Below are positions 7,524-62,480 of a stretch of 64,000 nucleotides of DNA, one piece after another. Position numbers and translations under genes: made by a program. A model generated the notes under the pieces. That model had not been told where the DNA came from. It saw only the letters and a list, made by a program, of their open reading frames with translations, and did no database searches. The DNA is from Ophelia neglecta (Eukaryota), in assembly GCA_965285935.1 (NCBI GenBank), contig OZ260661.1:116312001-116376000 (forward strand). The letters run 5' to 3'. Position 1 is the first letter of the stretch, and each line of letters begins with the position of its first letter.

Positions 7524-9860
7524 TACATACTTACATGTAGGTGCTGTGCTCTAGTCACAGAGTACATTTATTAACACAGGAGGGATGATGTTGGAAGATG
7601 AAGCCATGTCTTATTATTCTTTTGTTTCATGTTGAAGGCTGCTTTTCACAAACACAAAGACATTTTGTAATCTCAGATATTGAGCTCATAGCAAAAACAG
7701 AGCTTCTGGCAAAAATATCCCTAATCTATAACGCCTGCAGGCTAGTGTGCTTTCTGGTATGACAGGTCCTAATAAGAAAGAGGGTTCCCTTTTGTTGTGT
7801 TACAATACAGGATCTCCATGTACATACATACACTGTTTGTTAATCAATAAATTGCAAATTTATTACATCACTACTTTCATATGACAAGACAGAGACATGT
7901 TTTAATTATCTTTAAACAAAAAAGGAAAACTAGAGGCTATTTAATCAATGGTATGGACTTGTCTACATAACATGATGGATCTATCCACACTGGTTCACTG
8001 CTGGAAAACCCGCCCCAGCTACGAGCGTTGTCTTATGAGCCGCGCTGAATGTACATCGAAAGTGCCATGGATCCCATGTGTGCCTCGCTTCCATGTCATG
8101 AAAATAAATTAGATATTTCCTTATCTGCGATGTGATTTAGAGTAAATATATTAACAAACATGTTCTGCATAAATGTCATTGGAAAAGATTCATCAGGAAT
8201 ATTTTAGATTGCTCTTGTCAACAGAAAAAATGATTTATCTGTGGGATTCAGAATGGTTGGTAAAATATGGTCAAATGTAAACAAATACACTATTTGGGAG
8301 AAAGGTGAATGTCATATTCCTTCTTAGACCATCAGTTTCTATGGTTGTGGCCTTTACAAGAAAACTTTACTGTACTTACCGTAATCATCAGGAGCTTATT
8401 GTGCATTATATTTTATTTTCAACGCTCTGTTTACTACAACCTTAGGAACAAAAATTGGAAGAGTGGTGATACTTTTACTGCCTTACAAAATGTGGTTCAG
8501 CAACTGTCAAAGTTATAGGTTTTATAATCAGGCAGAGCAAATGAAAATGAAAATTTAAATATCTATCCTCCAAACATTTCTGTTAGATGTTAAATATAAA
8601 GGTGTACATTTCAATCTGGAGCCCTATGCTTTCAGTTGTTCCCCCAAGACATTCACAATTGACGGAGAATGCAAATGCCTGTAATCTTAGGTATTCAAAT
8701 GCTTTTTACGCACATACATCACATTTGACCCCCTAACAAGTCCACAGACAGTGAGAAAAATGACAAAATTACCTACATATATCATTTGCAAATTGTTTAG
8801 GTTATTGACTCAAGAAAAGCACACATGTGATCCATGGCACTCTTGATGTATCCACAGTGCGGCTCATACGGTAAAGCTTATCGCTGTGGCAGGTTTCCCG
8901 ACGGTTTGGTTGGCCTTGTGGGCTCCTAACAGTGGTGTGGGGTTACTCCCTGGAATACTTGGAATCTAATGTGGCTTTTAATTTCCAATACCTTGATTAC
9001 AACCCTCTTCAATCAACCCTACTGTCTATATCACAACAAAACACTGCCTTCCAGATTTTTAAAACAAGATTCCAAAGAGCTGGGATGTCAGGCCCAAAGT
9101 GCACCATACAGGGATTAGGGCAGAAATTAATACAACTTTGAATACATTTGCATTCATTTATAGAACACTTCATGTATTGCTAAGGTGTTTTTTCTTGCAT
9201 CAGTCTAGCATAAATTTCTATTCGGCATGAGATAAATTATAAAGATAATGCAGATTAATGCACTACAGATATTACTTTGTTCATAATTGTCCTAAATCTT
9301 ATGCATCTCCATGATTGTTGGAGAAAAGGGTGATTTTTCTTTGCAGGAAGCTTCACACAATTCCAGCGCTTTGTGCTGTCTGGCTTTGATGGAAGATGGC
9401 ATAATATTTGATGATGAATGCCATAGCAGTCTCCTGAAGAAGCGAATCAATAGTAATCTAATCTGAAATAGCTAACTAAGAACAAGAGTTCATTAACTAC
9501 ACTGCAATTGTTGTAACAGCTAGCTTGCTCTACTATAACAAGAGAAAATGAAAATTATTAGAAGGAACATTGGATAACATCTAGAAAGGTTTATCTCGTT
9601 TGTTCAGCAATAATAATGTTAACAAAAATCACTTGTATGAAAGAAACAATAAGGATCAGCTGCTTGATGGCATCTGCTTAAAACAAATTCCTCTCAAAAT
9701 TACATTTACTTGATGGCGAACTGTCTTGATATGATGAGCAGGTTGGATTAAAGCTATAAGAACGATTTGTAAGCAGGCTGAGTGGACTAACACCCAAGGA
9801 CATTAGCTCTTTATGGGTGATTTACATAAATTTTTCCATGCTTTGACTGGACTAAATAAA

Positions 9861-30083: not shown

Positions 30084-33000
30084 GTGGGTGAAACTTAATG
30101 AATTCTATGTAATATCTTGAGTAATATTAGTTTAAATTTCCACCATCCATAGCCTTTAATACCACAGATTGTCTGATATGTTACCAGGCTAATATACACA
30201 TGTACCTAGATTATTATGCTTTTTCCCTCAAGTACATTTATACAAGGTTTAAATTTCAATTCAGTTTGAAATTTGTGCAAAACTGTTTTTTTAGATTGCT
30301 ATGCCCTTTAAATACTACCATATAAAAACATGTAATTGTTTGTGGCCATCATGGTGCATATTCAATGATCAAAAATTGATACTTTAAGTCTTACTGTCAC
30401 TTAAAATCAAGGCAACAATTGCAGTTTAGGAGTTTCCTCTCTGGTATTTAAATGAACCTGGGCAATGCTTACATGTTAACAATGGTGAAAGAATATGTAT
30501 GGACAAGAAAAATGTTATTGTCACTTCTATTATGCATGAGTTTATCAAATCTAGCTTCTAAATTTGCTTGTGACGACTGTAAATGTCATCACCTGCCACC
30601 GGACAAGGTTTTATTGTTGCAGTAAAATATACTGTGTCATAAATTCCCCTAACAAGCCCTTCCATTACAATATTGTGAACAGAAAAATAGAATAGGGTAG
30701 TCTTTAATATAATGCAGGGTCCATTTTTTCAACCAGGATTTAGAATTATAATTTGTGCAAGGTGTATGTATGGCTATAAAAAATTTAATTAAACACTTTT
30801 TCTTCCCCTTTTACTGCTGGTTTCTGTTTGCTAATGCAAAATTTAGTCTTCAGGCTCTGGGCTCAGGCCTGTTGGATTTCTGAACCACAGCTTGGCTGTT
30901 TTGTGACGCAGGCAGTGTATGGCCCTTTCAGCTTGGGGGCACCTATTCCCCTCAGCAGCTGATCATGTGATACCTGAGGGGCAATGAGCTATTCCTAGGA
31001 AGTGCTCAAATAAATCAGTGGATATAACCATATTTTGCAAAATGTTTTCACACATCATAATGTTTTTTTTTTCAAACACAAAGGAACAAGGTCCTGCAGA
31101 AATTATGGGAGCTGCAGATACGCAAGCAGAAATGTCTGTTCATGTACCGTATAGCCCTTTGTACTAACCGCAAAATATTCAGGTTTCAGATCAATAAAAG
31201 CTGCAAATATCCTCGCCAGACAGGGGGTGCGGTTTAATCAAAGGGATTTTGTTGGGTCAAGTCAAAAATATGTTGAATTACGAAGCTCAAAACGGCCAGA
31301 TTCCAGTGAGTGATAATATAGGATGATAAGGCTAGAGTCGACTTGGTAGGGGGGGGGGGGCGCTGGTGGCCGGCCGGGGTGAAGGTGTGGGCTCCCTCCG
31401 TCATCCACGTAGCCCACAGAGCCCAGTAACGATCCTTGAAGGGCTTGTTGATGGCCACGTCTTACGGATGCAGGATCGAAGTGAGGCCACCTGGAATGAC
31501 AGCCATGTCGACTTTCCTTCGTGCTAGCTCTGCCTTCACGGCGTCTGTCAGATGAGCGCGGAAGGAGTCCCAGACTAGGAGCTTCCTAGCCGAGCCCGGG
31601 GCGGGAAGTGGGAAGGCGGCTCTCATCCACTCGAGGCAGCCGAGCTTCCTCTTTCCCTTGAATATGGCGTGGGGAGTTAGCTTAGATCCTTCGGCAGCAC
31701 AGGCGAGGACAACGGTGAAACCACGTTTCTCCGCACCGTTGGTTCTGATGGGCACTGTCTTATCTCCCTTCTTGTGTAATGTCCACTCCATCGGCAGATC
31801 AAACTTGAGTGGAGTTTCGTCCATGTTAACGATGTCAGACAGGGCGTACTGTCCATTGAAATTATGGTTAAAATATCAACACACACAATATACGTATACT
31901 ACGACTGATGGCAGTAAATTATGTTAATGCAGGGGTAGGTAACCATGGCCATGTATGCAAATTAGAGAGGTCACTATGATACACAGTGGGTAACCATGGT
32001 CATGTATGCAAATTAGGGAGGTTACTATGATACGTCACAAGCATCATCATCGATGTTATTACCGTTCTATTCTCATAATAAACCGCAATATGATTGTATG
32101 TAAACAACAGCTGTAATGGTTTGTCGTTTTAAATAGTTTTCTTTTGATGACTTCAGTACAGAGTTTGTTCCTCTCATCCCTTTGATCGTAAACGGTTACA
32201 TTTTGAAATGTGCAAAATCTTTGGCCAGGGCCAGAATCGCAATCAACAAGTTAACAAAATGACACCTCTTTGATTTGTGTTATCAGAGATCATCTAAGTA
32301 CCAAGAGTGCAAAACAGGTGTGGTGGTTAGACAAATCTGTGAAAGCCAATTGGTGTCAGATCTCCTGAGCACAAATGTGACACCTTTAATTTTGCCGCTG
32401 TTCTAGATGAAATGCCTCTCGGAATTGAGGTTACTAACAATTTTTTTATAATGCGGTTTATTGTAAGGGTTTTTCTTGGGATGTTTCAGGGCAGGAAAAA
32501 AGGTTTTAAAGGCCCGTACAATGGGGGTGCGGTTTATTCAAGATGGCGGTTAGTACAAAGGGTTTTACGGTATGTGTGGTTACAGTGAGGCAGAAAAGTC
32601 ACATTGTGGGGTCCAAGTATTAAGATAGAATTTTCTGACATGTAGATATACAATGTATGTGAACATAATACATTTATAGAGGTACATTACCCTTAAAATG
32701 TTTAATTGACATTTTGCTGTTTTAAGAATCATAACATATCATTTGAATATATAAACATATTTATCATTGCTATTCAGAGAGATAGAAAGTCTAAAGGAGG
32801 CAGCCTATTTAGTGGCCAGATTAATTGGATTAAGGCTATTCAAGTTAATGAGAAAACCTGACTTTATGTAATTTGTGGTACAAACCTATTTCTGCTATTG
32901 ACATGCTTAGTTTCCTCATATCATTTAAGATATGTAAAATGCCAATTCCAAAATAAATACAACATGTTACCTACTGGTAATGGTATGCAAACAAGAACCT

Positions 33001-45000: not shown

Positions 45001-48000
45001 TGCGTATTGATTGCAGAATTAATCAGTTAATATCTTTATCATACATGGGTTCTGTTATTAGTTTGCTCATATTATTGCTTGTGATAAATATCAATGACCA
45101 GAAAAAGTCGGATTCATGAAATTGTTTAGGTAGAAGGCAAATATATTGACTAAGCAGAGTGCACTCTAATGTAAAACTGTTCACCAAAGCCCACTCTTGA
45201 ACAGAAATTCTATTGGGAGCATTGAACGTTAAGCACAATTTAGGTAATTAAGCACCTAGAAAACGAATTTGTGATGAATTATAAATTAATGGGTATTTAA
45301 TCATAATTTGAACTTTGTTGTTGTCGTGATTAGTGGAGCTGGCAAGAAGCCCTACCTGACTGCCCAGCAGTTCCGGGACTTTCTGAATGATGAGCAGAGA
45401 GACTCGCGTCTGAATGAGATTCTTTATCCTTACTGTGATCTGAAGAAGGCACAGACGCTAATAAACATGTTTGAGCCCAACCAAAGTCTCGCCAACAAAG
45501 GTAATCTATAACGATCCACCATACAGTGTGGGGCCTTAACTGTTCACTGGACAGTGTGAGGCACAAGCTGTACACCAGACAGTGTGGGGCCTTAACTGTT
45601 CACTGGACAGTGTGGGGCATAAACTGTTCACTGGACAGTGTGGGCATAAACTGTTCACTGGACAGTGTGGGGCATAAGCTGTTCACTGGACAGTGTGGGG
45701 CATAAGCTGTTCACTGGACAGTGTGGGTAAGCTGTTCACTGGACAGTGTGGGGCATAAACTGTTCACTGGACAGTGTGGGGCCTAAACTGTTCAATGGAC
45801 AGTGCGGGGCATAAGCTGTACACCAGACAGTGTGGGGCCTAATTTGTTCACTGGATAGTTTCATGCCTAAGGTGAGACCTGGACTGTGTGGGGTCTACTT
45901 TGTACACTGGATAGTGTAGGGCCTAAGCTGTACACTGGAATGTGAAGGGGCCTAAGCTGTAAACCAGACAGTGTGGGGTCTAAGCTGTATGCCTGAAAGT
46001 GTGGGGCTTAAGCTGTTTGACATTGTGGATCCTAAGCTGCTTGACAGTGTTGGCCCTAGTCTGTTTGACAGTGTGGGCCCTAGTCTTTTTGACAGTGTGG
46101 GCCCTAGTCTGTTTGACAGTGTGGGGCCTAGTCTGTTTGACAGTTGGGGCCCTAGTCTGTTTGACAGTGAGTGGGGACTAAGCTGTATGATGTATTCTAA
46201 TCGCAAGAAATGAAGCCACTGCCAAGTGATCAGACAATTATAAAGTATGAGCTATCCATAGTTATGTTTTAAGTACTAAACTACTCCTGACCCGTTACTT
46301 TAGAATTACTTATAGTTCTAACTAACGTTGCTAACATTTCAGATTCAGAAGTGCCGCCAGGTATGGTATTTCGCCGATAGTATTCATGTTTTTTATTCAG
46401 ATCTAGTGCATTTAGATTCTAGCTGTTTTAGTTTATCCTTGATATGATCTGCTGCTTAGGGACCCACCATTAAGAAAATTTGATGGAGGGCTAGAAGATA
46501 TGTGAGTGTCCCCAGACCTGCCTTTTTTTTATAGCAAAAATACATAGGAGATGATGCCTTAACCTGAGAGACCAAATTATTTGTCTTCAAATATGAAAAC
46601 CCAACTTTTTTTCCTCTTCGAAGTCTTCTAGCCCCCCCCCCCTGCCCTGCCCCCCCCCAGTCTGCTAATAATGCATCCTTTACATGGCATGTCAGTTAAT
46701 TTGATTCAGTTTCAGACTGTGCGTTGTTAAACAAACTCAATGGGTAAATTTTTTCTCATCATTTGATGCAACCTTTCAGTTTTTGTAATTCTCTTTGGTG
46801 ATAGTTTATTTGTTCAGAAGGCCTGATACCTATATATTAAACAGGGCTGTTTGACAATTAGTTTACAAACATTTATTGACTTACAGTTTTTTTTCAATCA
46901 GCTCCTCTTGGCTTTGTTTTATTGTATCCTATTGAATATATTTCTAAACACAAGAAAGGCTCCATTTAAGGAGAGACTATATTCGTGGCTATGATGGAAA
47001 GGGGAAAGAAGAAAGTAAATGCAAATGGCATGTGGCATACTTTGCATTTTATATGAAAATGAGAGTTCATATTGTAACCTAAACATAGCCTTCAATACTT
47101 CAAAAAAGATGGGAAAATCTGGTCTCCATCCTCCAAAGTTGTAATGGAAATATTCTTTTATTGTATTATAAAGTCAAAACCTTTGGTCTGTCATATTTTA
47201 GACAATATATTAGTTGTACTTTGTCACCTTATAAGTTTGCCTGGTTGATTTAAATAGGGGTTGATATGGAATTATATTTTTGTCATCAATACCATTGGTC
47301 ATATTCAAGTGTAGATATCCCATTATTGTTTTATATTAATTCAATTGGTTATGCTTATGAAATTAGCATAGCTTCTAGATAGTTTAAAAGCAAAGTTTGT
47401 ACATGTAAGTTTGAAGTGCATGGTATTTGTGCAATGAATTGACAGAAGGTCAACCAACATATATATAAGATGATTCTATGAAAGCATTTTGTTCTAAAAT
47501 TGTTATTTAACAACAAGATTCATTTAACAAAATATTAGTATTTAATATTTACGAGTTTGTACAACTTAGTTATCAAACATATGCAAGTATGCTCGTATCA
47601 GAAACTTTTTTTATCCCAACTACCAGACAGCACTTGCCATCCTTTTAAAATATTGAACAAAATCAAACTGAATTACATTTAAAAGTGTACTTAGTGATTT
47701 TCTTGATTGCATGTATTTGCAGGACACATTTCCCAGGATGGCTTTCTGAGGTACCTGTTGAGTGAGGACAATGTTCTGGTACCTTCCGAGAAGCTGGACT
47801 TAAACGAGGACATGGATCAGCCGATAGCTCACTACTTCATCAACTCCTCACACAACACATACCTTACTGGTAAGTGGCTACAGCAGCTCACCCACCAAAA
47901 CTATCAGACATGTGTAGAGTGTCATATATGCCATGTTGTTGATGATAGGAAATGACATCTTATTTGGTCTGATATTGTAATATATATTAGTTCCTTTATA

Positions 48001-51000
48001 TCTGGGACAGTTAATAGGGACAAAAATGAAAAAAAAAATCAAGTATTTGGTTAAACACATAATCAGTTTATTTAAGGTGTATTGCTGATGCTGTTTTATG
48101 TACCTGTTTTTAGGACACCAGTTGACAGGTAAATCGTCTGTAGAGATTTACAGACAGGCCCTGTTAACAGGCTGTAGATGTATAGAGCTGGATTGCTGGG
48201 ATGGTCGGGGGTCGGATGAAGAACCAATCATCACTCATGGATTTACCATGTGTACAGAAATTGTCTTCAAGGATGTTATAGAGGCAATAGCCGAGACCGC
48301 CTTTAAGGTCTCAGAGTACCCAGTCATACTCTCATTTGAAAATCACTGCTCGTGAGTATTGTAATGTATATGCTTAGCAGGCTCGCCAGTGAAACAATCT
48401 ATGTAGTTTATGGCAATCTTGAAGGCAATTAAATAGTGTTTTATGACACATGTGTGTTTTATTGGGCAGTTTAGTCCGTCTGGTGGTTATAAATAGTGTT
48501 GGAATCAAATTCTCCAAATCTCGGTGGATTTTTGTTGCATTCCTTCTTATCCGTGAATCTCTTTTCCTACTCCAGGCCTAAGCAACAAGCTAAGATGGCA
48601 GCACACTGCCGGAATATATTGGGTGAGGCACTTCTTACAGACCCACTGGAATCACATCCAGTAAGTTGAAAGCCAACATTCATCAAGTACAGGGGTAACA
48701 TTACAGACTTGACAATCAATATATACATCTATATACAGTCCTTGTATTAAAGCCTTATATTTATTATTAAAGTTAGTAACTAACAATTACAACAATATCC
48801 TACTTAAACATTTTTATTAAGTAAAATGATTTTGAAATTAACAGCTTTCATAACCATATGCAGCTTATGATAGCCTAGACTGCTTAAGCTTCTAACTGTT
48901 GACCCTCTTAAGTAAGAAATCTGGCTGAACTACATGGCATGCTTGCTTCCAAATCATGGCTGAAATCTCTACATAAAATACTATAGGCAATTGTTTAGCT
49001 TGCATGCGAGAGTAATAATTTCCATTGAATTATGTTAAACTACCAAGACCTGAACAATTCTTTAATAATTCTGTAGAATTGGATGTGTACTAGATTGCAT
49101 ATTCTCATTCTTAATTGAATTACTCCGGTCTAATTACATTCATTTAATAGTGTAAGAAATATAGAATGATTTTTATTAAAAGGATTTACAGTTATGTTTA
49201 AGAAATAGGTTGATATGAATGATAATGAGCTCAATCGTTTGATTATAAACCCGCACGCCTGGTGTATGTTTTGATCAAATGTGTGTTTATTAACTGCATC
49301 TTGAAATAAGTTTTGTTCCTGGTGAAGAAAACAAAGAATATATAAACAGCCATTGAACTGTCATTCCCACTGTAAGAACTGTCATTCTCACTGAGACAGA
49401 ACTGTCATTCCCACTTTGAGAACTGTCATTCCCACTGTGAGAACTGTCATTCTCACTGAGACAGAACTGTCATTCCCACTGTGAGAACTGTCATTCTCAC
49501 TGAGACAGAACTGTCATTCCCACTGTAAGAACTGTCATTCTCACTGAGACAGAACTGTCATTCCCACTGTAAGAACTGTCATTCCCACTGTGAGAACTGT
49601 CATTCCCACTGTGAGAACTGTCATTCCCACTGTAAGAACTGTCATTCCCACTGTGAGAACTGTCATTCTCACTGAGACAGAACTGTCATTCCCACTTTGA
49701 GAACTGTCATTCCCACTGTGAGAACTGTCATTCTCACTGAGACAGAACTGTCATTCCCACTGTAAGAACTGTCATTCTCACTGAGACAGAACTGTCATTC
49801 CCACTGTAAGAACTGTCATTCCCACTGTGAGAACTGTCATTCCCACTGTGAGAACTGTCATTCCCACTGTAAGAACTGTCATTCCCACTGTGAGAACTGT
49901 CATTCTCACTGAGACAGAACTGTCATTCCCACTGTAAGAACTGTCATTCCCACTGTGAGAACTGTCATTCCCACTGTGAGAACTGTCATTCCCACTGTAA
50001 GAACTGTCATTCCCACTGTGAGAACTGTCATTCTCACTGAGACAGAACTGTCATTCCCACTTTGAGAACTGTCATTCCCACTGTGAGAACTGTCATTCTC
50101 ACTGAGACAGAACTGTCATTCCCACTGTAAGAACTGTCATTCTCACTGAGACAGAACTGTCATTCCCACTGTAAGAACTGTCATTCCCACTGTGAGAACT
50201 GTCATTCCCACTGTGAGAACTGTCATTCCCACTGTAAGAACGGTCATTCCCACTGTGAGAACTGTCATTCTCACTGAGACAGAACTGTCATTCCCACTGT
50301 GAGAACTGTCATTCCCACTGTGAGAACTGTCATTCCCACTGTAAGAACTGTCATTCCCACTGTGAGAACTGTCATTCTCACTGAGACAGAACTGTCATTC
50401 CCACTGTAAGAACTGTCATTCTCACTGAGACAGAACTGTCATTCCCACTTTGAGAAATGTCATTCCCTATTTGAGCTCTGTAATTGCCTCTGTGAGCTCT
50501 GTCATGGATTTTGTGAGAACTGTCATTCCCTCTATGAAAACTGTCATTCCCTCTGTAAGAACTGTCATTTCTTCTGTCATGACCTCTGTGGGAACTGTCT
50601 TTCCCTCTGTGGGAACTGTCATTCTCACTGTGAGAATTGTCATTACCTCTGTGACAACTGGCATTTCCTCAGTGAGAACTTGCATTTCCTCTGTTAGAAA
50701 TGTCATTACCTCTGTATGAAATGTCATTTCCTCTGTGAGAACTGTCATTCTCACTGTGACAACTGGCATTTCCTCTGTGACAACTGGCATTTCCTCTCTG
50801 AGAACTTTCATTTCCTCTGTGGGAAATGTCATTCCCTTTGTGTGAACTTTGATTTCCTCTGTGAGAACTGTCATTCCCTCTGTGAAAACTGTCATTCCCT
50901 CTGTAAAAACTGTCATTTCTTCTGTCATGACCTCTGTGAAAACTGTTATGACCTCTGTGAAAACTGGCATTTCCTCAGTGAGAACGTTCATTCCCTCTAT

Positions 51001-54000
51001 GAGAACTTTCATTTCCTCAGTGAGAACTGTCATTCCCTCTGTGACAACTCATTTCCTCAGTGAGAACGTTCATTCCCTCTATGAGAAATGTCATTCCCTC
51101 TGTGTGAACTTTCATTTCCTCAGTGAGAACTGTCATTCCCTCTGTGACAACTCATTTCCTCAGTGAGAACGTTCATTCCCTCTGTGGGAAATGTCATTTC
51201 CTCTGTGGGAGATGCTATTCATATTAGATTGATTTCATGAGAACATTCCTGTCATGAGAACTGTCATCCATTCCATGAGAACACTTAGTCATTATGTCTG
51301 TCACAACCTGAGAATCAGCAGTCAATATGTGAAAACTCTCAGGCAACCCCAAATCACAGCAAGAATTGTCAGTTATATTCAACAACAACAGACAAATTTC
51401 TGCTGTCACAGTATATGCCACAGTTCACTGAAAAAAGGCAGACAAAAGGACTCTCCACCGAGAAATGACATCCAAACGTGGGGGAGAATACTAACATCTC
51501 ATTTGATTGCCGGCAGAGGTAGCACAGGGCACCGGTTTTTATGTGAGGGTGGGAGGGACATGCTTAGGTATCATTCTCTTTCATTCATGTGTTGCCTTAG
51601 AACAGTAAATAGAATACCACCAGCACATGTCATATATAGCAAGGAGCCTCTCAGTCAGAATTCAGTGTTTAAAAATTTAAACACATCCATTCAATACATT
51701 TTCATATCTGTTTATTTTAAAGAATTTATCTTGTTTTCACCGTTTTTCTCTTGTTACAATTGTTATACACTGTGAATTATGAGCTGGCAAGGGACTGTTT
51801 TCTATACAATGACATGTGCTCCATATTAATTATTGTTGATACAAGGTAATGTTAATTTCATGTATCTGCTTCACTAAACATGTATGTTGCATATATATTT
51901 TATAATTACATGTACATGGACATGTCCTTTGCACATTACTTCCATGTACAGCGTGATATATATATATTTATTGTGTACCTAGTGGAAATCAGTAGGTAAC
52001 AGATGTGAGCTTTGATTGGCCAAGGATCATCATATTATCAATGTACAGCCTTCCCCAGCATCTCCTAACATTTGGTAGAACTGTTCATTTGCATTCTCCA
52101 TAGTTTAAAAACCTGTGCGAGGAGCAGACAAATTAACTTTATGTTGGACAATGATTTCTATATTTTGGTATTTATATTTTGTTTGCTGTGCTAACACTTT
52201 ATGTAAGGCATGTGTAGGCCCTACCTGCTACTCTAACTAATACTACTATACATAATTACATATTGATCATAACGCTACCAAAAACTTGTGTGGGATTCAG
52301 GATTAAGAATATATTGGAACATATGTGGATGGCATGTAAAGGAATTGAAAAGTGCACTTTAAGATTGAACTGCTTTTTGTGAGGACAAAATACTTGCATT
52401 ATTAATTTTTGTCAGGGCGTTATTACCGGATTTTCTACACATATGTTTCTTTTATATCCTTTTCCTGGCCACTAGAGTGCCATGATTTCTAAATCACAAT
52501 AGAATTGAAATTTTCTAACACATAACAGTAGTCACTATGCAATGTTGCCATCATTGCCTTTCTTACGGGTTCAGCTTAGCCACTAGCACCTTTATTTTCA
52601 ATTTGATTTTATGTTAAATTTGGTTTGTTTTCAGTTTGTCTTTCATTTTGTATAAGCCACTCCACTTTCTCCCTACTAGCTAGAGACTGGCATCCCTTTA
52701 CCAAGCCCACAACGTCTACGGGGAAAGATTATAGTGAAAAACAAGAAGCGCCACACACATAAGTGTAAGTAATGTCTCGGAGAGGGAGCATTCATTGCAT
52801 GATCCCCACACTTGACCCTAGACAAGGCTATTATGTAATGAGTTGAGGTTTCCTTGTCACTGTAGTTTTCTGTTCAGTTAGGCCCTTCAACCTTTTTTTA
52901 ACAATTATTTGAATACAGCAGAAAAGAAATACTGTCAATTCAACCTACTCAAGATAGCCTTGTCTCTGTTTTAACCATGCTTTTCAGAAGATGTGGATTG
53001 AGTCACAACTATTCTTGATTTGTGTCTTTGAGAGGGCGTCTGCCATCTCCAGCCAGTCCTCTCCATGACAATGAAGACTAGCACTGTGACTCAGTCCTTA
53101 TTCTGAATTTTTGTTTCAGGAAAGAACCTTTCACCCAGATACCCCCTGTCTACAGGTATCTCCTAACTGACAGCCTATTGTCTCATATGTAATTTGTATT
53201 TTATAACACCAGCTAAAGCGTGGCCAATCAACGCCGAGCCCTTTGCAGCTCAAGAGAAAGTTTATTATTAAGGCCAAGAAGCGTCAGAAGCCTCGCTGTA
53301 AGTATTGACCCTGTGCGGACAATGCACTGGGCCTGCACCAACCTTGATTTATCTCCTTGTATGCCTGGTCGTGTATGTTCCCAGACTACCTATTGGTATG
53401 GGTGGCTGCCGCACTTCCATATCTAGCCTTATACAAGTAAGACGCCACTACATCTCGGAGTATGCTGTCATGTAGCACATTGGTACAATAGATGTGTGTA
53501 GCCTACTCACCCACCTAGCATCCTGGGCACTCCACAGTACAGCCATGTTTCTGCTTTAGTTACACCCAGTTTGATCATGTCAATATGAACTGTTTCAAAA
53601 CTGGCCATTTCTATTATTGCACATTTAGGTACTTACTTGCATTTAGTGATGCAAAAACATTTCTTTCAAACTGATTGAAAATTAATTGAAAATTAATTTC
53701 AAATTTATTTCAAATTTATTACAAATTTAGCATCTTTACCTAGAAATCTATAATTTATGTTTTTCCCTCATTGATCTGTTAAGAGATGGGCCAGGTTTTG
53801 AATTCAGCCCTGTGGCAGTGTCCTTCTCAGGCCTCTGTGCCTATTAATAGTCAGCCCTGGTTATTTTTATTTCAGATATTTATCGAGCCATGGTGTTTTC
53901 AATATCATTTGAATATTTACCAAATCATTGTTGTGAGATGATGACTTGTTCAGTATCTAGCTTTATTTATTGGTTTCTGAAGTTGTATTATGTGTACAAT

Positions 54001-57000
54001 GTATAATGTTTTTGTAAGAATATACACACTCTAATAAATGAAGTTAACTGTACATGTATAATGGGAAAGGGTTTTTCAAATTGCAAAGACGTCTCAGTTT
54101 TAGCTCAGCTTGCTACTGCAAGCTGGCCTCAGCAAATCAAGTTAGTGTCTGTTGAGTCGCGCAGTGCATCCATCTTTTTTTCCTTCCACATAATTATGAT
54201 ACATTTCCTACTTCTACTTAAAGACCTTAAAATATACACCTACATTTTTTGTACAACTTTATCCATTCATATATATATGGCTCCATTATTCATCTACCTC
54301 TTTCAGATTCATTTCAAGTTTGTGTAGGCCAGTGTTAGCTACCTAAACTTTGCTGTAGATCATTCCCTGATACACTGTACATTGAATCTTTCTCTCCAAA
54401 ATGCCCTAGGACTGTTGCCCTTATTGGAGCTTTCTGAATGACCCTAGCAGGCCTCGCTACCAAAGTTATTTAAAATTTAAATGTATTTGACCTGCTATGA
54501 TTGGATGAAATGGCAGGAAAATCAATTTTCATTGGTTTGAGGTAATTCACATACCCACTGGTACACATATACATCAATATCCACTGGATACTTGAGGATG
54601 CATAGACATGCCCAGTGTATAAACCACAAATAGATAGAACTAGTAGATACCCATGAAAAACCTGATGACACTGAACTTGTCAATCACTTTTTTTTCTGAT
54701 TGGTCTATGAGTCTTACATTGTCAGGGCATCCATCTGTTGAGTAAATAAGAAGTTGTGTAAAAGGGATCTTTTGGCGACCTTAGATTTGACCTTGTTACA
54801 GTTATTATTCAAAGCTGAGTGCCATGTCAGTGGACATCTTGTTACAATGCACACATTATTTATATGACTGTGCTTATTTGCACCTCTGTGTATTTTAATT
54901 TCCATCACAGAATTTGATCAGATTATCTGTAATAGTATAGACCTACCTGTTTTGAGAATGTTTATTTATGACTATGTGAAGCTCATTGGTGTGGTGATAC
55001 AAGTGGCCTAAAATGAAGTGCTGGTTATCATTTAACATGCATGTATCCTCACAATGCTGTGTAAGTGGGGTGGTTTTACTTGTGACTAGGTTTTCCATTT
55101 TCAATTATTATCATAATAAGGTCAACTCTCAGACTGATGGAAATAGTCTGGGCAATTTTAAAAAGTCTGGTCTATTGGCCAATTTAAAAAGTCTGGCCAA
55201 TTTGAATAAATTGTATCATTTCATTGTAAAATGAATGTAGCAACAATGTGTCAATACAAAATGCCTATTAGAATAAAATAAATACTGTTACATATTAGTA
55301 TGTCAACAATTCTGTATGAAAACCAATACATAAACAAGTACGAGAATCAAAGATTTCAAATTTTTATTCTAGCCACCAGTTTACATGTTATGCCATTTGT
55401 ATCATTTTAAGTAAAGGATTTCTTAGGCACAATGTGCTTTTCCTTGCATTAATTTTACTAGGTGATACATATCCCACTCATTTTGTGCACGTCCTATTCT
55501 GTAAGTGATTTTAACCCATTCACCTTTTGCAGCCAAATCACGTGCTGTGAAGAAGGTGCCAACAGTGGTTGGGGAAACTGCCGGGGAGATAGAGGTTGTG
55601 TCAGTGGAGGGGGAGGGCCATGTAGGTGGGGAGGGGGAGGGGGAGGAGAAAGCCCACACTGCAGCCCCTGAAGAGGAAGTACTGGTTGTGGCGGAGGCAG
55701 ACGGAGGGGATTCTCTCTCTGAAAGTGATGAGGAGAGTGAAGAGGAAGGAGATGCTGGCCTCACAGAAGAAGATGAAAAACAGAGATTAGAGGCTAAAAA
55801 AGAAAAGGTGGTTTTAACATAAATTGCTCTTATGCACAACATGATACATGGTTTTAAAATGATAACATTATCATTAGGACATTAAGGTTATGCATCTGAG
55901 ATCCATCAGGCCATCTAGATATATGTCCTTAAAATATATTTGCTGGATACAAGACATCACCTCATTATTTTTTGTTTCCGGTACAGGGCACTGCTGGACA
56001 GGAAGCAGAGGCAGGCATGGAAATGTCAGCTCTAGTCAACTATATTCAGCCATCAAGATTTCATTCTTTTGAGATAGCAGCAAGTATGTTTACCTCAAAC
56101 ACCAATTGTAGGCTTTCAAACATTGCTTCAATGCTATGAAGTGCTTTATAAATAAATTACTGGTAATGTAAGACTATATAGTCCTTATTTGCACATAATG
56201 ACAGATATTGTTGATTTATATACTATGTACATGTAATTTAGGCAAAGTGTCCTTCAATTTTTTAGAGCGAAATAGAAGTTATGAATGTACCTCATTTGTG
56301 GAGACGCAAGCCACAGCCCTTCTCAAGGAGTTCCCAGTTGAATTCGTCAAGTATCCTTTATCATGCTGATGAAGATTGATCAATTGAATTGATTGATTTA
56401 TTATTTTTATAAAATGAATTTCCATCAAAATAAACATTGATTAAAAAGCCATAGGTTGAGTTTTGGTTATTGACAGCAAGATAAATGTCCTACAGTTTGT
56501 CTTTAACCTAAACTAGCTTCAATAAACGCCAAATCAGCAGAATCTACCCAAAAGGTACCCGAGTGGATTCCAGCAACTACATGCCTCAGATTTTCTGGAA
56601 TGCAGGATGTCAGCTAGTGGCTTTAAACTTCCAAACATTAGGTATGGGTGAAAGCTTCTCGTGAGTGTCGTATGGGGCTGCAATACTCTGCAGGTTATAA
56701 GCATTACATTTACCAACTAGGAAATATCTTGACATTTTATGCCTGTCGGCTTTATGTTGCAGATTTAGCAATGCAGCTGAACCTTGGAATATTTGAGTAC
56801 AATGGTCGAAGTGGCTGCATTTTAAAGCCCGACTTTATGCGCCGAAAGGACAGGCAATTTGATCCATTTGCTGAGTCAACAGTTGATGGTATTATCGCAG
56901 GAACTGTAGAAATAAAGGTTAGAGCCAGCTTATTGTTGTCCTAAGGGGAGAGTAAGGAGAAAGGTGAGACTAGAATCAGACCTGTATTGAGGAGAATCTG

Positions 57001-58954
57001 TGTTGAGCTTTCCTTTATTGCCTACTTGTGTGTATATCCTGCTTCAAATGTTAAATTACTCCCTTGTGGAAGATATTTATAGAAAGTTTGGTAATCAGTA
57101 TGTTTTATTAGGAGTCCCTTGTGTGAGGTAAATCAGTGGTAAATATTGCAGTTTTGATAGTCCTATGTTCTGTACCGTTCACATTGTGCTCTTTTTAGAT
57201 CATAAGCGGAGCATTCTTAACTGATAAAAAGGTGGGGACCTGTGTTGAGGTGGACATGTATGGCTTACCAGCTGATACGGTACGGAAGAAATTCAAAACC
57301 AAGACCATTCCCGGGAATGGCATTAATCCCCTGTGGGATGAGGATCCTTTTGTGTTCAGAAAGGTAAGGAGCAAGGACCACAAGATAAATGGGTTTCACT
57401 GATACATCAGCTGTGGGTATAATGACAATAAGTAGTCATCACACAAACATCAGGTTAACATACATCTATGAAAGTGTTATGGTATAAGTAAAATGTGTTC
57501 AGTAGTCTCATCTTAACCCTTCACTTAAACTTCTCAAAACAACTGCTTCTTTTATCTAGCAAGGCATTTTACTCCCTCACCAACACTACCCATATATGGC
57601 AATAGCTGCTTTATTGACCTTAGAGTCTTTACCATGAGAGTACTTGAATGCAAAATTAAGAAAACTGCATACTACTTGTTTTTACACTGTCTCTCTCACA
57701 GGTTGTGTTGCCTAACTTGGCCACTCTGCGTATAGCAGCATATGATGACAATAATCGTCTGCTTGGCCATCGTGTTCTGCCTGTAGAAGGCCTACGACCT
57801 GGCTACCGACACATTTGTCTGAGGAATGAACTCAACCAGCCACAAGGCTGCGCCACTCTCTTTGTATACATCAGTGCTAGAGATTATGTGTCAGATGCTT
57901 TTGCAGGTAATATTTTGTTGTATGCAATGTATAAATCAACTTTTATTTATTAGTTTGTCTAATTTTTCTATCCCTTGAAACCCGTTATCTGTGATGACTC
58001 ATGCCTTTGTAAAACAAATAGCGTAAACCACTGAATTATTAAAGTAGGCTTGCCTTTTCTGGGGAGCATCACACAGTATAGCCCATTTCCTTCTCATTGC
58101 ACTGCGCTATTCAAAATGGTCACCAAAGGTGCATTTTGATGAAAGGGAACTACTCTGGGGCAAAGTGCTAATGAAAGGCAATTTGTGTTAAGATAAATTT
58201 TCTGCGGAAATCATATTGAAGTCAGTGTCTTTATTGGAGGGGTCCGGCCAAAGGAGAAAATTTGATTGATCACATTCTTTGTTATCTCACCCATATTATT
58301 GACTAGGTGGCACCTTTTATAACCTCATGAGAAGGATTGCACCAAGCTATGTATGTGTTTCAGACTTTGCAGCAGCCCTGGCAAACCCCATAGCTTACCA
58401 GTCGCAGGTAGAGAAACATGCCCAGCAGCTGGCAGCACTGGAGGATGACTTTGATGTGGAGGTACAGATCATGTATAACAAACCCTGCATGAGCTCGGCA
58501 TAGCTAGTTGATAGTTAATACTGACTTGTGTAAAGGGCAACTGATTATATATTAGAATATAATACTTATGAATAATAAAAAAATAAATGGGGGATGCAAC
58601 TCAATAGAAAGATGCTTGACACAGGGATAAGGTGAAAGAATTGTGGAAACAAAGCACATTTCCTCAACACCTTTGAGGTCCGAAAATAACCGCTTATATA
58701 TTGTTAAGCTAGAAGGAACTATTATTCACATTGCTTGCAGGATGAAGAAGCAGCCGAGGCCACAGTGGCTGAGGTAAGAAGAGCAGAAATGGATGGCTTT
58801 TCACGAGAGAAAAACAGCTCTGTGATGTCTAAACGCAGTGCAGTGGACACGCCACCAATTATCAGTCGTGTGGGGAGTACCACTGCTTCCAGACAGCTGG
58901 CCAAACAGGAGAGCACACAGTCATGTGTATCACAGGGCTCAGGAGCATCCACTG
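30015..58954 (+). CDS. PLCB: Phosphoinositide phospholipase C beta (PLCB1-3/Plc21C-like), multi-exon gene, partial at both ends
   Basis: 19 AG/GT-bounded exons join in frame. Motifs: [74 protein letters not shown]2 ([20 protein letters not shown]), ALANPI. The linker [19 protein letters not shown] resembles PLCB1-3/Plc21C rather than PLCB4/NorpA. Confidence 0.96.
31340..31855 (-). pseudogene. pogo-like DDE transposase remnant
   Basis: IVNMDETP...[19 protein letters not shown]...[10 protein letters not shown]...[20 protein letters not shown]; 35 residues between second and third D; in-frame TAA; apparent internal deletion; no DNA-binding domain seen. Confidence 0.9.
31938..32033. repeat. 51-nt-period direct duplication inside the transposon, each copy with an ATGCAAAT octamer
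   Basis: ggtaaccatgg(c/t)catgtatgcaaattag(a/g)gaggt(c/t)actatgatac x2. Confidence 0.8.
32834..33448. mobile_element. Possible old TTAA-flanked non-autonomous DNA element
   Basis: TTAA|ggctattca ... tgaatggct|TTAA imperfect TIR; internal catgg(t/c)aaccat motifs. Confidence 0.3.
42872..43012 (+). CDS. PLCB: PLC-beta exon, PH domain ([11 protein letters not shown]...[26 protein letters not shown])
   Basis: ttgcag|GAC...AAG|gtcagt, 141 nt, phase 0-0. Confidence 0.95.
44113..44246 (+). CDS. PLCB: PLC-beta exon, PH end/EF1 ([19 protein letters not shown]...EGKIPVK)
   Basis: cttcag|ATA...AA|gtaaac, 134 nt, phase 0-2. Confidence 0.94.
44467..44551 (+). CDS. PLCB: PLC-beta exon, EF hand ([28 protein letters not shown])
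   Basis: tcccag|T...AAG|gtgagg, 85 nt, phase 2-0. Confidence 0.94.
44780..44880 (+). CDS. PLCB: PLC-beta exon, EF hand ([33 protein letters not shown])
   Basis: ttgcag|AAT...CT|gtgagt, 101 nt, phase 0-2. Confidence 0.94.
45334..45500 (+). CDS. PLCB: PLC-beta exon, EF hand (GAGKKPYLT...[13 protein letters not shown]...[10 protein letters not shown])
   Basis: gattag|T...G|gtaatc, 167 nt, phase 2-1; [12 protein letters not shown] hallmark. Confidence 0.95.
45523..46185. repeat. Compound minisatellite: 28-nt unit (cactggacagtgtggggcataaactgtt) grading into 24-nt unit (gacagtgtgggccctagtctgttt)
   Basis: Direct tandem repetition, shared gacagtgtggg core. Confidence 0.93.
46343..46360 (+). CDS. 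PLCB: Candidate 18-nt alternative microexon of PLC-beta (adds DSEVPP)
   Basis: ttgctaacatttcag|ATTCAGAAGTGCCGCCAG|gtatgg; phase 1-1, stop-free, three CTAAC motifs and a TGC just upstream. Confidence 0.6.
47723..47869 (+). CDS. PLCB: PLC-beta exon, EF4/X-box start ([11 protein letters not shown]...[12 protein letters not shown])
   Basis: ttgcag|GA...G|gtaagt, 147 nt, phase 1-1; catalytic His motif SSHNTY. Confidence 0.97.
48114..48351 (+). CDS. PLCB: PLC-beta exon, X box ([10 protein letters not shown]...[12 protein letters not shown]...ITHG...SFENHC)
   Basis: ttttag|GA...TC|gtgagt, 238 nt, phase 1-2. Confidence 0.97.
48576..48660 (+). CDS. PLCB: PLC-beta exon, X box ([28 protein letters not shown])
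   Basis: ctccag|G...CCA|gtaagt, 85 nt, phase 2-0. Confidence 0.95.
49355..51270. repeat. Minisatellite, 21/23-nt unit (gaactgtcattcccactgtga); homogeneous to ~50455, degenerate after
   Basis: Direct tandem repetition. Confidence 0.97.
52680..52764 (+). CDS. PLCB: PLC-beta X-box terminal exon, variant A ([28 protein letters not shown])
   Basis: ctactag|CTA...T|gtaagt, 85 nt, phase 0-1; canonical LPSP..L.GKI.VKNKK. Confidence 0.93.
53120..53155 (+). CDS. Candidate 36-nt cassette exon ([12 protein letters not shown] in phase 0)
   Basis: tttttgtttcag|GAA...CAG|gtatct; stop-free in phase 0; 57 nt upstream of variant B acceptor. Confidence 0.3.
53213..53297 (+). CDS. PLCB: PLC-beta X-box terminal exon, variant B, duplicated/mutually exclusive ([28 protein letters not shown])
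   Basis: acaccag|CTA...T|gtaagt; same 85-nt length and 0-1 phase as variant A; colinear PSP..L..K.I.K.KKR motif. Confidence 0.85.
55533..55807 (+). CDS. PLCB: PLC-beta exon, acidic X-Y linker
   Basis: ttgcag|CC...AAG|gtggtt, 275 nt, phase 1-0; [20 protein letters not shown] acidic stretch. Confidence 0.92.
55987..56083 (+). CDS. PLCB: PLC-beta exon, linker end/Y-box start ([32 protein letters not shown])
   Basis: gtacag|GGC...A|gtatgt, 97 nt, phase 0-1. Confidence 0.95.
56266..56350 (+). CDS. PLCB: PLC-beta exon, Y box ([27 protein letters not shown])
   Basis: ttttag|AG...AA|gtatcc, 85 nt, phase 1-2. Confidence 0.95.
56351..56516 (+). other. U12-type (minor spliceosome) GT-AG intron
   Basis: 5' splice site GTATCCTTT (exact U12 consensus); branch site TCTTTAAC at 56500-56507 close to the AG; no polypyrimidine tract. 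Confidence 0.9.
56517..56641 (+). CDS. PLCB: PLC-beta exon, Y box ([41 protein letters not shown])
   Basis: aactag|C...G|gtatgg, 125 nt, phase 2-1. Confidence 0.97.
56763..56917 (+). CDS. PLCB: PLC-beta exon, Y-box end ([27 protein letters not shown]...GTVEIK)
   Basis: ttgcag|AT...AAG|gttaga, 155 nt, phase 1-0. Confidence 0.96.
57199..57363 (+). CDS. PLCB: PLC-beta exon, C2 domain ([27 protein letters not shown]...FVFRK)
   Basis: ttttag|ATC...AAG|gtaagg, 165 nt, phase 0-0. Confidence 0.96.
57702..57906 (+). CDS. PLCB: PLC-beta exon, C2 domain ([15 protein letters not shown]...[12 protein letters not shown]...DYVSDAFA)
   Basis: tcacag|GTT...G|gtaata, 205 nt, phase 0-1. Confidence 0.96.
58364..58461 (+). 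CDS. PLCB: PLC-beta exon, proximal CTD / Galpha-q-binding helix-turn-helix ([32 protein letters not shown])
   Basis: tttcag|AC...GAG|gtacag, 98 nt, phase 1-0; ALxxPI motif. Confidence 0.94.
58741..58954 (+). CDS. PLCB: PLC-beta exon, CTD linker (DEEAAEAT...SQGSGAST)
   Basis: ttgcag|GAT...G|gtcagt, 214 nt, phase 0-1, open frame, low-complexity linker. Confidence 0.82.
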
Positions 58955-59034: not shown

Positions 59035-62000
59035 ATAACAACCTCTCATAGTCACCTCTCATAGTCACACTACCTTACCCAGGCTATACAACAACCTCTC
59101 ATAGTCACACTACCTTACCCAGGCTATACAACAACCTCTCCTAGTCACACTACCTTACCCAGGCTATACAACAACCTCTCATAGTCAAACTACCTTACCC
59201 ATGCTATACAACAACCTCTCATAGTCACACTACCTTACCCAGGCTATACAACACCCTCTCATAGTCCCACTACCTTACCCAGGCTATACAACACCCTCTC
59301 GTAGTCACACTACCTTACCAAGGCTATACAACACCCTCTCATAGTCACACTACCTTACCCAGGCTATACAACAACCTGTCATAGTCACACTACCTTACCC
59401 AGGCTATACAACACCCTCTCATAGTCACACTACCTTACCCAGGTTAAACAACAACCTCTCATAGTCACACTACCTTACCCAGGCTATACAACAACCTCTC
59501 ATAGTCAAACTACCTTACCCAGGCTATACAGCAACCTCTCATAGTCACACTACCTTACCCAGGCTATACAACAACCTCTCATAGTCACACTACCTTACCC
59601 AGGCCATACAACAACCTCTCCTAGTCACACTACCTTACCCAGGCTATACAGCAACCTCTCATAGTCACACTACCTTACCTAGGCTATACAACAACCTCTC
59701 ATAGTCACACTACCTTACCCAGGCCATACAACAACCTCTTATAGTAACACTACCTTACCCAGGTTAAACAACAACCTCTCATAGCCACACTACCTTACCA
59801 AGGCTATACAACAACCTCTCATAGTCACACTACCTTACCCAGGCTACACAACATGCTCTCATAGTCAAACTACCTTACCCAGGCCATACAACAACCTCTC
59901 ATAGTCACACTACCTTACCCAGGCTATACAACACCCTCTCATAGTCCCACTACCTTACCCAGGCTATACAACACCCTCTCATAGTCACACTACCTTCCCC
60001 GGCCATACAACAACCTCTCCTAGTCACACTACCTTACCCAGGCTATACAACAACCTCCCATAGTCACACTACCTTACCAAGGCTATACAACAACCTCTCA
60101 TAGTCACACTACCTTAGCCAGGCTATACAACAACCTCTCATAGTCAAACTACCTTACCCAGGCTATACAACAACCTCTCATAGTCACACTACCTTACCCA
60201 GGCCATACAACAACCTCTCATAGTCAAACTACCTTACCCAGGTTAAACAACAACCTCTCATAGCCACACTACCTTACCAAGGCTATACAACAACCTCTCA
60301 TAGTCACACTACCTTACCCAGGCTATACAACACCCTCTCATAGTCCCACTACCTTACCCAGGCTATACAACACCCTCTCATAGTCACACTACCTTCCCCG
60401 GCCATACAACAACCTCTCATAGTCACACTACTTTACCCAGGCTATACAACAACCTCTCATAGTCACACTACTTTACCCAGGTTAAATAACAACTTCTCAT
60501 AGTTACACTACCTTACCCAGGCTATACAACATCCTCTCATAGTCACACTACCTTACCCAGGCTATACAACACCCTCTCATAGTCACACTACACTGCCCAG
60601 GCTATACAACAACCTCTCATAGTCACACTACACTGCCCAGGCTATACAACAACCTCTCATAGTCACACTACCTTACCCAGGCTATACAACATCCTCTCAT
60701 AGTCACACTACCTTACCCAGGCTATACAGCAACCTCTCATAGCCACACTATCTTACCCAGGCTATACAACAACCTCTCATAGTCACACTACACTGCCCAG
60801 GCTATACAACAACCTCTCATAGTCACACTACACTGCCCAGGCTTTACAACAACCTCTCATAGTCACACTACCTTACCCAGGCTATACAACAACCTCTCGT
60901 AGTCACACTACCTTACCCAGGCTATACAGCAACCTCTCATAGTCACACTACACTGCCCAGGCTATACAGCAACCTCTCATAGTCACACTACACTGCCCAG
61001 GCTATACAACAACCTCTCATAGTCGCACTACACTGCCCAGGCTATACAACAACCTCTCATAGTCACACTACACTGCCCAGGCTTTACAACAACCTCTCAT
61101 AGTCACACTACCTTACCCAGGCTATACAACAACCTCTCGTAGTCACACTACCTTACCCAGGCTATACAGCAACCTCTCATAGTCACACTACACTGCCCAG
61201 GCTATACAGCAACCTCTCATAGTCACACTACACTGCCCAGGCTATACAACAACCTCTCCTAGTCACACTACCTTACCCAGGCTATACAACAACCTCTCAT
61301 AGCCACACTACCTTATCCAGGCTATACAACATCCTCTCATAGTCACACTACCTTATCCAGGCTATACAACATCCTCTCATAGTCACACTACCTTACCCAG
61401 GCTATACAGCAACCTCTCATAGTCACACTACCTTACCCAGGCTATACAACATCCTCTCATAGTCACACTACCTTACCCAGGCTATACAGCAACCTCTCAT
61501 AGTCACACTACCTTACCCATGTTAAACAACAACCTCTCCTAGTCACACTACCTTACCCAGGCTATATAACACCCTCTCATAGTCACACTACCTTACCCAG
61601 GCTATACAACCTCTCATAGTCACACTACTTACCCAGGCTATACAACACCCTCTCATAGTCACACTACCTTACCCAGGCCATACAACAACCTCTCCTAGTC
61701 ACACTACCTTACCCAGGCTATACAACACCCTCTCCTAGTCACACTACCTTACCCAGGCTATACAACACCCTCTCCTAGTCACACTACCTTACCCAGGCTA
61801 TACAACAACCCGTCATAGTCACACTACCTTACCCGTGCTATACAACACCCTCTCATAGTCACACTACACTGTCCAGGTTCATACAACAACCTCTCCTAGT
61901 CACACTACCTTACCCAGGCTATACAACAACCTCTCCTAGTCACACTACCTTACCCAGGCTATACAACAACCTCTCATAGTCACACTACCTTACCCAGGCT

Positions 62001-62480
62001 ATACAACAACCTCTCATAGTCACTCTACCTTACCCAGGCTATACAACAACCTCTCATAGTCACACTACCTTACCCAGGCTATACAACACCCTCTCATAGT
62101 CACACTACCTTACCCGTGCTATACAACAACCTCTCATAATCACACTACACTGCCCAGGCTATACAACACCCTCTCATAGTCACACTACCTTACCCAGGCT
62201 ATACAACAACCTCTCATAGTCACACTACCTTACCCAGGCTATACAACACCCTCTCATAGTCACACTACCTTACCCATGCTATACAACAACCTCTCATAAT
62301 CACACTACACTGCCCAGGCTTTACAACAACCTCTCATAGTCACACTAACTTACCCAGGCTATACAACACCCTCTCATAGTCACACTACCTTACCCAGGCT
62401 ATACAACAACCTCTCATAGTCACACTACCTTACCCAGGCTATACAACAACCTCTCATAGTCACACTACACTGCCCTGGCA
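59035..62480. repeat. Minisatellite, 40-nt unit (acaacctctcatagtcacactaccttacccaggctataca), ~85 copies
   Basis: Direct tandem repetition. Confidence 0.98.

Follow-up and report, generated by a model that had tools for sequence, protein, structure and literature searches.

A probable mutually exclusive exon pair, conserved across annelids, at the X-box end of a PLC-beta gene

A PLC-beta gene carrying two versions of one exon

We analysed a stretch of 64,000 nucleotides from the genome of the annelid Ophelia neglecta (hereafter the window, meaning this whole stretch) and found a PLC-beta gene in it. The predicted domain order of the gene is PH_14, EF-hand-like, PI-PLC-X, PI-PLC-Y and C2, and its nearest relatives are annotated as PLC-beta. 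Exons were searched one by one, and joined frames were translated locally solely to locate stop codons. In Pfam searches with single exons, PI-PLC-X and PH_14 scored above the curated cut-off, while EF-hand_like, PI-PLC-Y and C2 fell just under it, as fragments would be expected to do. In tblastn, 17 colinear segments align with the PLC-beta of Capitella teleta (P0227) at 76% identity, which makes this the closest protein found. Two transcript-derived proteins follow at about 72%, and the proteins of molluscs, ribbon worms and deuterostomes show lower identity than these. The gene is a PLC-beta1/Plc21C-type (PLCB1-type) paralog. The features described here are listed in Table 1.

Table 1. Positions of the exons, related genes and repeats described in the text
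Feature	Sequence	Position	Strand	Length	Remarks
Upstream exon	Window	48576-48660	+	85 nt	Phase 1 to 0; constitutive; donor for A or B
Exon A	Window	52680-52764	+	85 nt	Phase 0 to 1; encodes 28 residues; apparent canonical version
A-B intron	Window	52765-53212	+	448 nt	
Exon B	Window	53213-53297	+	85 nt	Phase 0 to 1; encodes 28 residues; annelid-specific putative alternative
Downstream exon	Window	55533-55807	+	275 nt	Phase 1 to 0; constitutive; acceptor for A or B
Last mapped PLC-beta exon	Window	58357-58449			
Open reading frame in early intron	Window	31462-31824	-	120 residues	
Two adjoining tandem arrays	Window	45523-46169			28-nt unit, 17.8 copies; 24-nt unit, 7.3 copies
Microexon candidate	Window	46310-46370			
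Minisatellite	Window	49355-51207		1.85 kb	21-nt unit; counted as a 42-nt double unit, 44 copies with 84% matches
Satellite	Window	59054-62468		3.4 kb	40-nt unit, 85.5 copies, 92% matches
X-box-end exon of second PLC-beta gene	O. neglecta L002 (G000:C1:89321255-89321338)	9256-9339	-		28 residues
PLC-delta-like open frame	O. neglecta L001 (G000:C7:80251457-80253910)	2458-4911	-	817 residues	Intronless
Capitella exon A	L003	29067-29151		85 nt	
Capitella exon B	L003	29543-29630		88 nt	28 residues plus one codon; GTGAGT donor
Dimorphilus A-type exon	L009	3360-3447		88 nt	AG and GT(G/A)AGT sites
Dimorphilus B-position exon	L009	3671-3758		88 nt	AG and GT(G/A)AGT sites

Two adjacent exons of the gene, which we call A and B, encode alternative versions of the same segment. 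Both are preceded by an AG acceptor and followed by a GTAAGT donor. They share 12 of 28 residues and 48 of 85 bases. In an ungapped BLOSUM62 comparison over the six frames of the 64-kb window, B reached a score of 55 against A, and the runner-up among about 128,000 positions reached 35; the match of B to A is in exact register with the splice sites of B. The homology of the two exons is far above background in the window and is no chance resemblance. Searched as 28-residue pieces, both exons have PI-PLC-X as their sole Pfam match, in its last 18-20 positions (125/127-144 of 144; exon A matches positions 127-144). The upstream exon is 87% identical to residues 427-456 of Capitella P0227 (tblastn), and the downstream exon encodes the basic-then-acidic start of the X-Y linker and takes one carried-over base.

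The joined frames remain open when either A or B is placed between the two constitutive exons. Inclusion of both leads to a TAA at 53269-53271, and skipping of both leads to a TGA early in the downstream exon. The lengths of A and B are both 1 modulo 3, so that an mRNA with both exons, or with neither, runs out of frame and soon meets a stop. On re-examination, the coordinates, lengths and translations that an earlier sequence-only reading of this DNA had assigned to A and B agreed exactly with ours, and our frame checks reproduced its argument about the two stop codons. In each productive mRNA, one of the two exons, A or B, would lie between the exon ending at 48660 and the exon starting at 55533. 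Transcripts with both exons or neither would be non-productive and would probably be cleared by nonsense-mediated decay.

Two further PLC genes were noted in the O. neglecta genome. One, on the same chromosome as the window, is a second PLC-beta gene with a single X-box-end exon, and no second copy of this exon was found in the 9 kb downstream of it. Its X-box end resembles that of vertebrate PLCB4. The other gene encodes, in a single open frame, all parts of a PLC-delta-like protein (PH, EF, X, Y and C2), with an X-box end reading KILVKGKKL; it is possible that this gene is a retrogene or a single-exon PLC gene.

The window is also rich in repeats. The intron that separates the upstream exon from exon A contains the minisatellite, which gives rise to long spurious open reading frames on both strands. 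The satellite lies downstream of the last mapped PLC-beta exon and causes a strongly negative GC skew at 58-62 kb. The two tandem arrays occupy an intron of the EF-hand region, near a microexon candidate. An open reading frame on the minus strand of an early intron may be a fragment of a DDE-type (pogo/Tigger-like) transposase.

Conservation, selection and origin of the exon pair

We found the A-then-B order, with AG/GT sites, matching phases and exon lengths of 1 modulo 3, in the Capitella teleta locus (L003), in two Capitella-like metagenome contigs (L006 and L007) and in Dimorphilus gyrociliatus (L009). In Capitella, exon B lies 391 nt downstream of A and has a pyrimidine-rich AG acceptor. 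The Capitella-like contigs, three in number (L006, L007 and L008), came from a search with a degenerate DNA pattern built on the motif that the B exons share. L006 carries the upstream exon followed by A and B, L007 carries A and B, and the shorter L008 carries B alone; A and B are 85 nt each wherever present in these contigs, and all of the exons end in T followed by a GTAAGT donor. One copy alone was found in the molluscs Lottia and Pinctada, in the ribbon worms Lineus and Tubulanus, and in the PLC-beta paralog of O. neglecta. Exon B is thus open and splice-competent in at least five other annelid-type loci, and the absence of any open, conserved B in relatives, which the sequence-only reading had named as the observation that would overturn it, does not hold.

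Among the five B exons compared, 16 of the 28 residues are invariant (L1, G4, P8, S9, P10, Q12, L13, K16, F17, I18, I19, K20, A21, K22, K23 and R28). Nei-Gojobori estimates for B give pN of 0.26-0.33 and pS of 0.80-1.05, the latter being saturated, and exon A gives a similar pN of 0.20-0.22. The 100 nt of intron on either side of B cannot be aligned between species. Saturated synonymous sites, invariant residues and unalignable flanking introns together indicate that B is selected as protein-coding sequence and is under purifying selection. This frame (frame 0) is read solely when A is absent, and so the coding constraint itself points to mutually exclusive use of the two exons, for which it is our chief argument.

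These comparisons bear on the view that B is an unused, decaying duplicate, a pseudo-exon that has stayed open by chance. A frame of 28 codons would be open by chance about one quarter of the time, every Capitella-like transcript found carries A, and the sequencing runs that hold O. neglecta exon B are all of genomic DNA. However, B has been kept at the same position, with the same AG/GT sites and phase and with 16 of 28 residues, despite saturation of its synonymous sites and of the introns. For the closest pair of B exons (L007 and L008), pN is 0.03 and pS is 0.75, and the Dimorphilus mRNA models use B. The sequence differences among the related loci also exclude contamination from one genome. 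The comparison of substitution rates that had been proposed for B found pN far below pS, and we consider a pseudo-exon extremely improbable.

Exon B could also be conserved as a poison exon, which would be added to A to stop translation and thereby lower PLC-beta output. In agreement with this, when A is joined to B the frame meets a premature stop within B in each of the four species checked (O. neglecta, Capitella, L006 and L007), so that such transcripts would be non-productive. A poison exon, however, would not account for the conservation of amino acids in frame 0, which is read only without A, while third positions are saturated. In the frame that is read after A, the B sequences are unrelated between species apart from the stop found in each of the four. 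The catalytic K-x-K-K and PSP motifs are kept in B, and the Dimorphilus proteins hold the B-position exon in frame. A role of B as a poison exon is thus very unlikely, and its selection as an alternative coding exon is the reading that we prefer.

The single exons of other groups give some indication of the age of the pair. In a maximum-likelihood tree of 28 columns, the B-position exons, six in all and with the divergent copy of Dimorphilus among them, fall on one branch (UFboot 83, SH-aLRT 84), the moderate support being due to the shortness of the alignment. The annelid A exons lie on the opposite side of this branch, where the molluscan and ribbon-worm single exons also fall. Exon A appears to be the canonical form and resembles the single exon found in molluscs, in ribbon worms and in vertebrate PLC-beta. 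Dimorphilus is a member of the Dinophiliformia, which are sister to Sedentaria plus Errantia (PMC7854359). Since Dimorphilus holds both exons, the duplication is older than the split between these groups. We suggest that an old tandem duplication of one 85-nt exon made the pair in the annelid PLC-beta1/Plc21C-type gene. The duplication would be either younger than the split of annelids from molluscs and ribbon worms, or lost in both of the latter groups.

The comparative evidence thus strongly supports the proposal, first made by the sequence-only reading, of a tandemly duplicated and mutually exclusive exon pair where the X box ends and the X-Y linker starts. Overall, we regard it as highly probable that A and B form an old, annelid-wide pair of mutually exclusive exons in this PLC-beta1/Plc21C-type gene, with one exon in each productive mRNA.

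Use of the two exons and control of splicing

We investigated gene models and transcripts for the use of A and B. The Capitella gene model (P0227) carries A and omits an intact B, and two transcript-length Capitella-like proteins (P0198 and P0210) also carry A. On the other hand, all three annotated isoforms of Dimorphilus carry the B-position exon in frame and skip an intact A-type exon. In the Dimorphilus annotation, transcript assemblies were weighted tenfold over protein alignments and splice variants were derived from the assemblies (PMC7854359). Given this weighting, the choice of B in Dimorphilus probably reflects transcripts. Outside the Dimorphilus annotation, we found no transcript or protein in which a B exon is flanked by the constitutive exons. 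The B signature KFIIKAKK is absent from about 300 public PLC-beta proteins, apart from the divergent Dimorphilus form, and a search with the 40-residue Capitella B frame gave no candidate among protein fragments of 22-70 residues. For O. neglecta, exon B occurs in three sequencing runs from one sample, as contiguous genomic contigs over 52400-56400 with no joints.

The annotations of Capitella and Dimorphilus each miss one intact exon. Current annelid models show one of the two exons, and the second isoform is therefore missing from protein databases. This one-sidedness could also be read in another way, namely that the pair is ancestral and one copy has recently been retired in O. neglecta, so that no switch exists there. 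The annotations of the relatives do show one form each, A in Capitella and B in Dimorphilus, and the genomic origin of the runs that hold O. neglecta exon B would fit as well. Both O. neglecta exons, however, keep their GTAAGT donors, AG acceptors, open frames and type-invariant residues, and the unannotated A-type exon of Dimorphilus is intact, which indicates an incomplete annotation rather than the loss of an exon. We therefore consider a recent retirement of one copy unlikely, while leaving it more room than either of the alternatives above. For O. neglecta itself, we infer that the exons are used in an either/or fashion, that A is the default and that the two forms differ in function.

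The introns offered few clues as to how such a choice might be made. A CTAAC about 46 nt upstream of exon B fits the usual branch-point consensus. A TGCATG, the Rbfox motif, is present at 52796-52801 in the A-B intron, 32 nt past A, as the sequence-only reading had noted; its suggestion of tissue control on this basis is unsupported, because the position of the motif is not conserved. The motif stands at other positions in Capitella and in L006 and is missing between A and B in L007, and its frequency is near chance (GCATG background of 0.8-1.9 per kb), so that we rejected Rbfox control as a candidate. In comparisons of 100 nt on each side of B across species, we found no conserved intron columns. 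In the intron sequence searched, the inverted repeats were short and species-specific, and no competing RNA structures shared between species were seen that would suggest docking/selector pairing. The A-B introns span 391-2985 nt across species, and steric exclusion is thus unlikely. The sole mechanism of exclusivity supported by these sequences is the predicted frame incompatibility of the two exons, together with the loss of non-productive transcripts.

The swapped segment and its possible meaning

Proteins made from A and B would differ solely in 28 residues. Exon positions 2-26 align to residues 449-473 of human PLC-beta3 (4GNK numbering; E 3.6e-6 for exon A). On this alignment, the swapped segment would take in a loop and a short helix surrounding the PSP motif, the final beta strand of the barrel's X half, on which both lysines sit, and the opening five residues of the autoinhibitory X-Y linker, which are its anchor point. 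The lysines K20 and K22 correspond to K467 and K469 of PLC-beta3. These match K438 and K440 of PLC-delta1, which established work identified as binders of the inositol 4- and 5-phosphates. The X-Y linker of PLC-beta3 runs from R471 to V584 (PMC10691244), and its opening residue, R471, is the counterpart of exon position 24. Deletion of this linker raises kcat about 1,100-fold, and most of the linker inhibition comes from its far end, T575-V584 (PMC10691244). The counterpart of this far end in the window gene is encoded by a constitutive exon.

A and B differ consistently at several positions. Position 2 is acidic or neutral in A and basic in B, and position 28, the last, is Lys in A and Arg in B. 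Position 17 is Ile in A and Phe in B, and position 21, between the lysines, is Asn in A and Ala in B; Dimorphilus departs from this pattern at both. The net charge is +5 to +7 for A and +8 to +11 for B. B had been described as the more basic of the two, and this is true of every one of the five species compared, the net charge of B being higher by 2 to 4. It had also been said to keep both lysines (KAK in place of KNK), and K20 and K22 are indeed invariant in the five B exons, so B should be catalytically competent. An S-T-P-S-P cluster that B was thought to have gained is, on the other hand, confined to O. neglecta: the other B exons read GSAPSP, YHIPSP, TILPSP and ASGLPSP. We accordingly rejected a conserved phosphorylation cluster in B. 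Most plausibly, the exchange of A and B would alter the electrostatics or geometry at the rim of the active site and the linker anchor, and so the basal activity or the set-point of activation by G proteins.

Mutually exclusive exon pairs that arise by tandem exon duplication are a well-known class. The annelid exons resemble such pairs in being adjacent and homologous, of equal or near-equal length, in the same phase and both conserved across species. As in those pairs, double inclusion or skipping is predicted from the frame to be non-productive, leaving one exon per mRNA. Within the PLC-beta family, Kim et al. are said to have described, in 1995, exon 4 of Drosophila norpA as a mutually exclusive pair in the N-terminal half of the protein. 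In contrast to the norpA pair, the annelid pair covers the last X-box strand, with the phosphate-binding lysines, and the linker entry; it belongs to the Plc21C/PLCB1-type paralog and is restricted to annelids. Mammalian PLC-beta variants (beta1a/b, beta2a/b and beta4) differ at the very C-terminal end or in whether individual exons are included or skipped (PMC12195575, a 2025 review). The annelid pair is like them in that splicing diversifies PLC-beta isozymes, but none of the mammalian variants replaces part of the catalytic X domain (PMC12195575), as the annelid pair does.

Some spiralian isoforms vary close to this site. Annotated isoforms of Lineus (X1 and X6; P0299 and P0300) differ right after K-N-K-K-x-H-x-H-K, and the same post-X-box variation is seen between Magallana gigas X15 (P0154) and a Crassostrea-labelled X12 (P0153). 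These isoforms alter residues past the X-box exon and leave the exon intact, whereas in annelids it is this exon that is exchanged. Among spiralians, isoforms seem to vary repeatedly at the point where the X-Y linker begins. In full-text searches of the literature, we came across no account of mutually exclusive exons at the X-box end in any PLC-beta; the sequence-only reading had likewise known of no PLC-beta switch of this kind. The A/B pair is real and conserved, and probably undescribed.

PLC-beta is the main effector of Gq-coupled receptors, and its activity is set by the autoinhibitory X-Y linker located within the active site. A conserved either/or exon that holds the lysine strand and the start of the linker would be a natural experiment on how this element tunes activity. 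It is conceivable, with a little less than an even chance in our estimation, that annelids diversify one PLC-beta gene at its catalytic centre by splicing and not by gene duplication, and that the A and B isoforms are kinetically or regulatorily distinct (for example, in PIP2 handling, in basal autoinhibition by the X-Y linker or in membrane electrostatics) and are deployed in different cells. If this is true, A and B are natural, evolution-tested variants of an active-site strand for dissecting PLC-beta autoinhibition. The pair would show that a single animal phylum has maintained two forms of the catalytic core of one PLC-beta gene from a time before its major living lineages separated.
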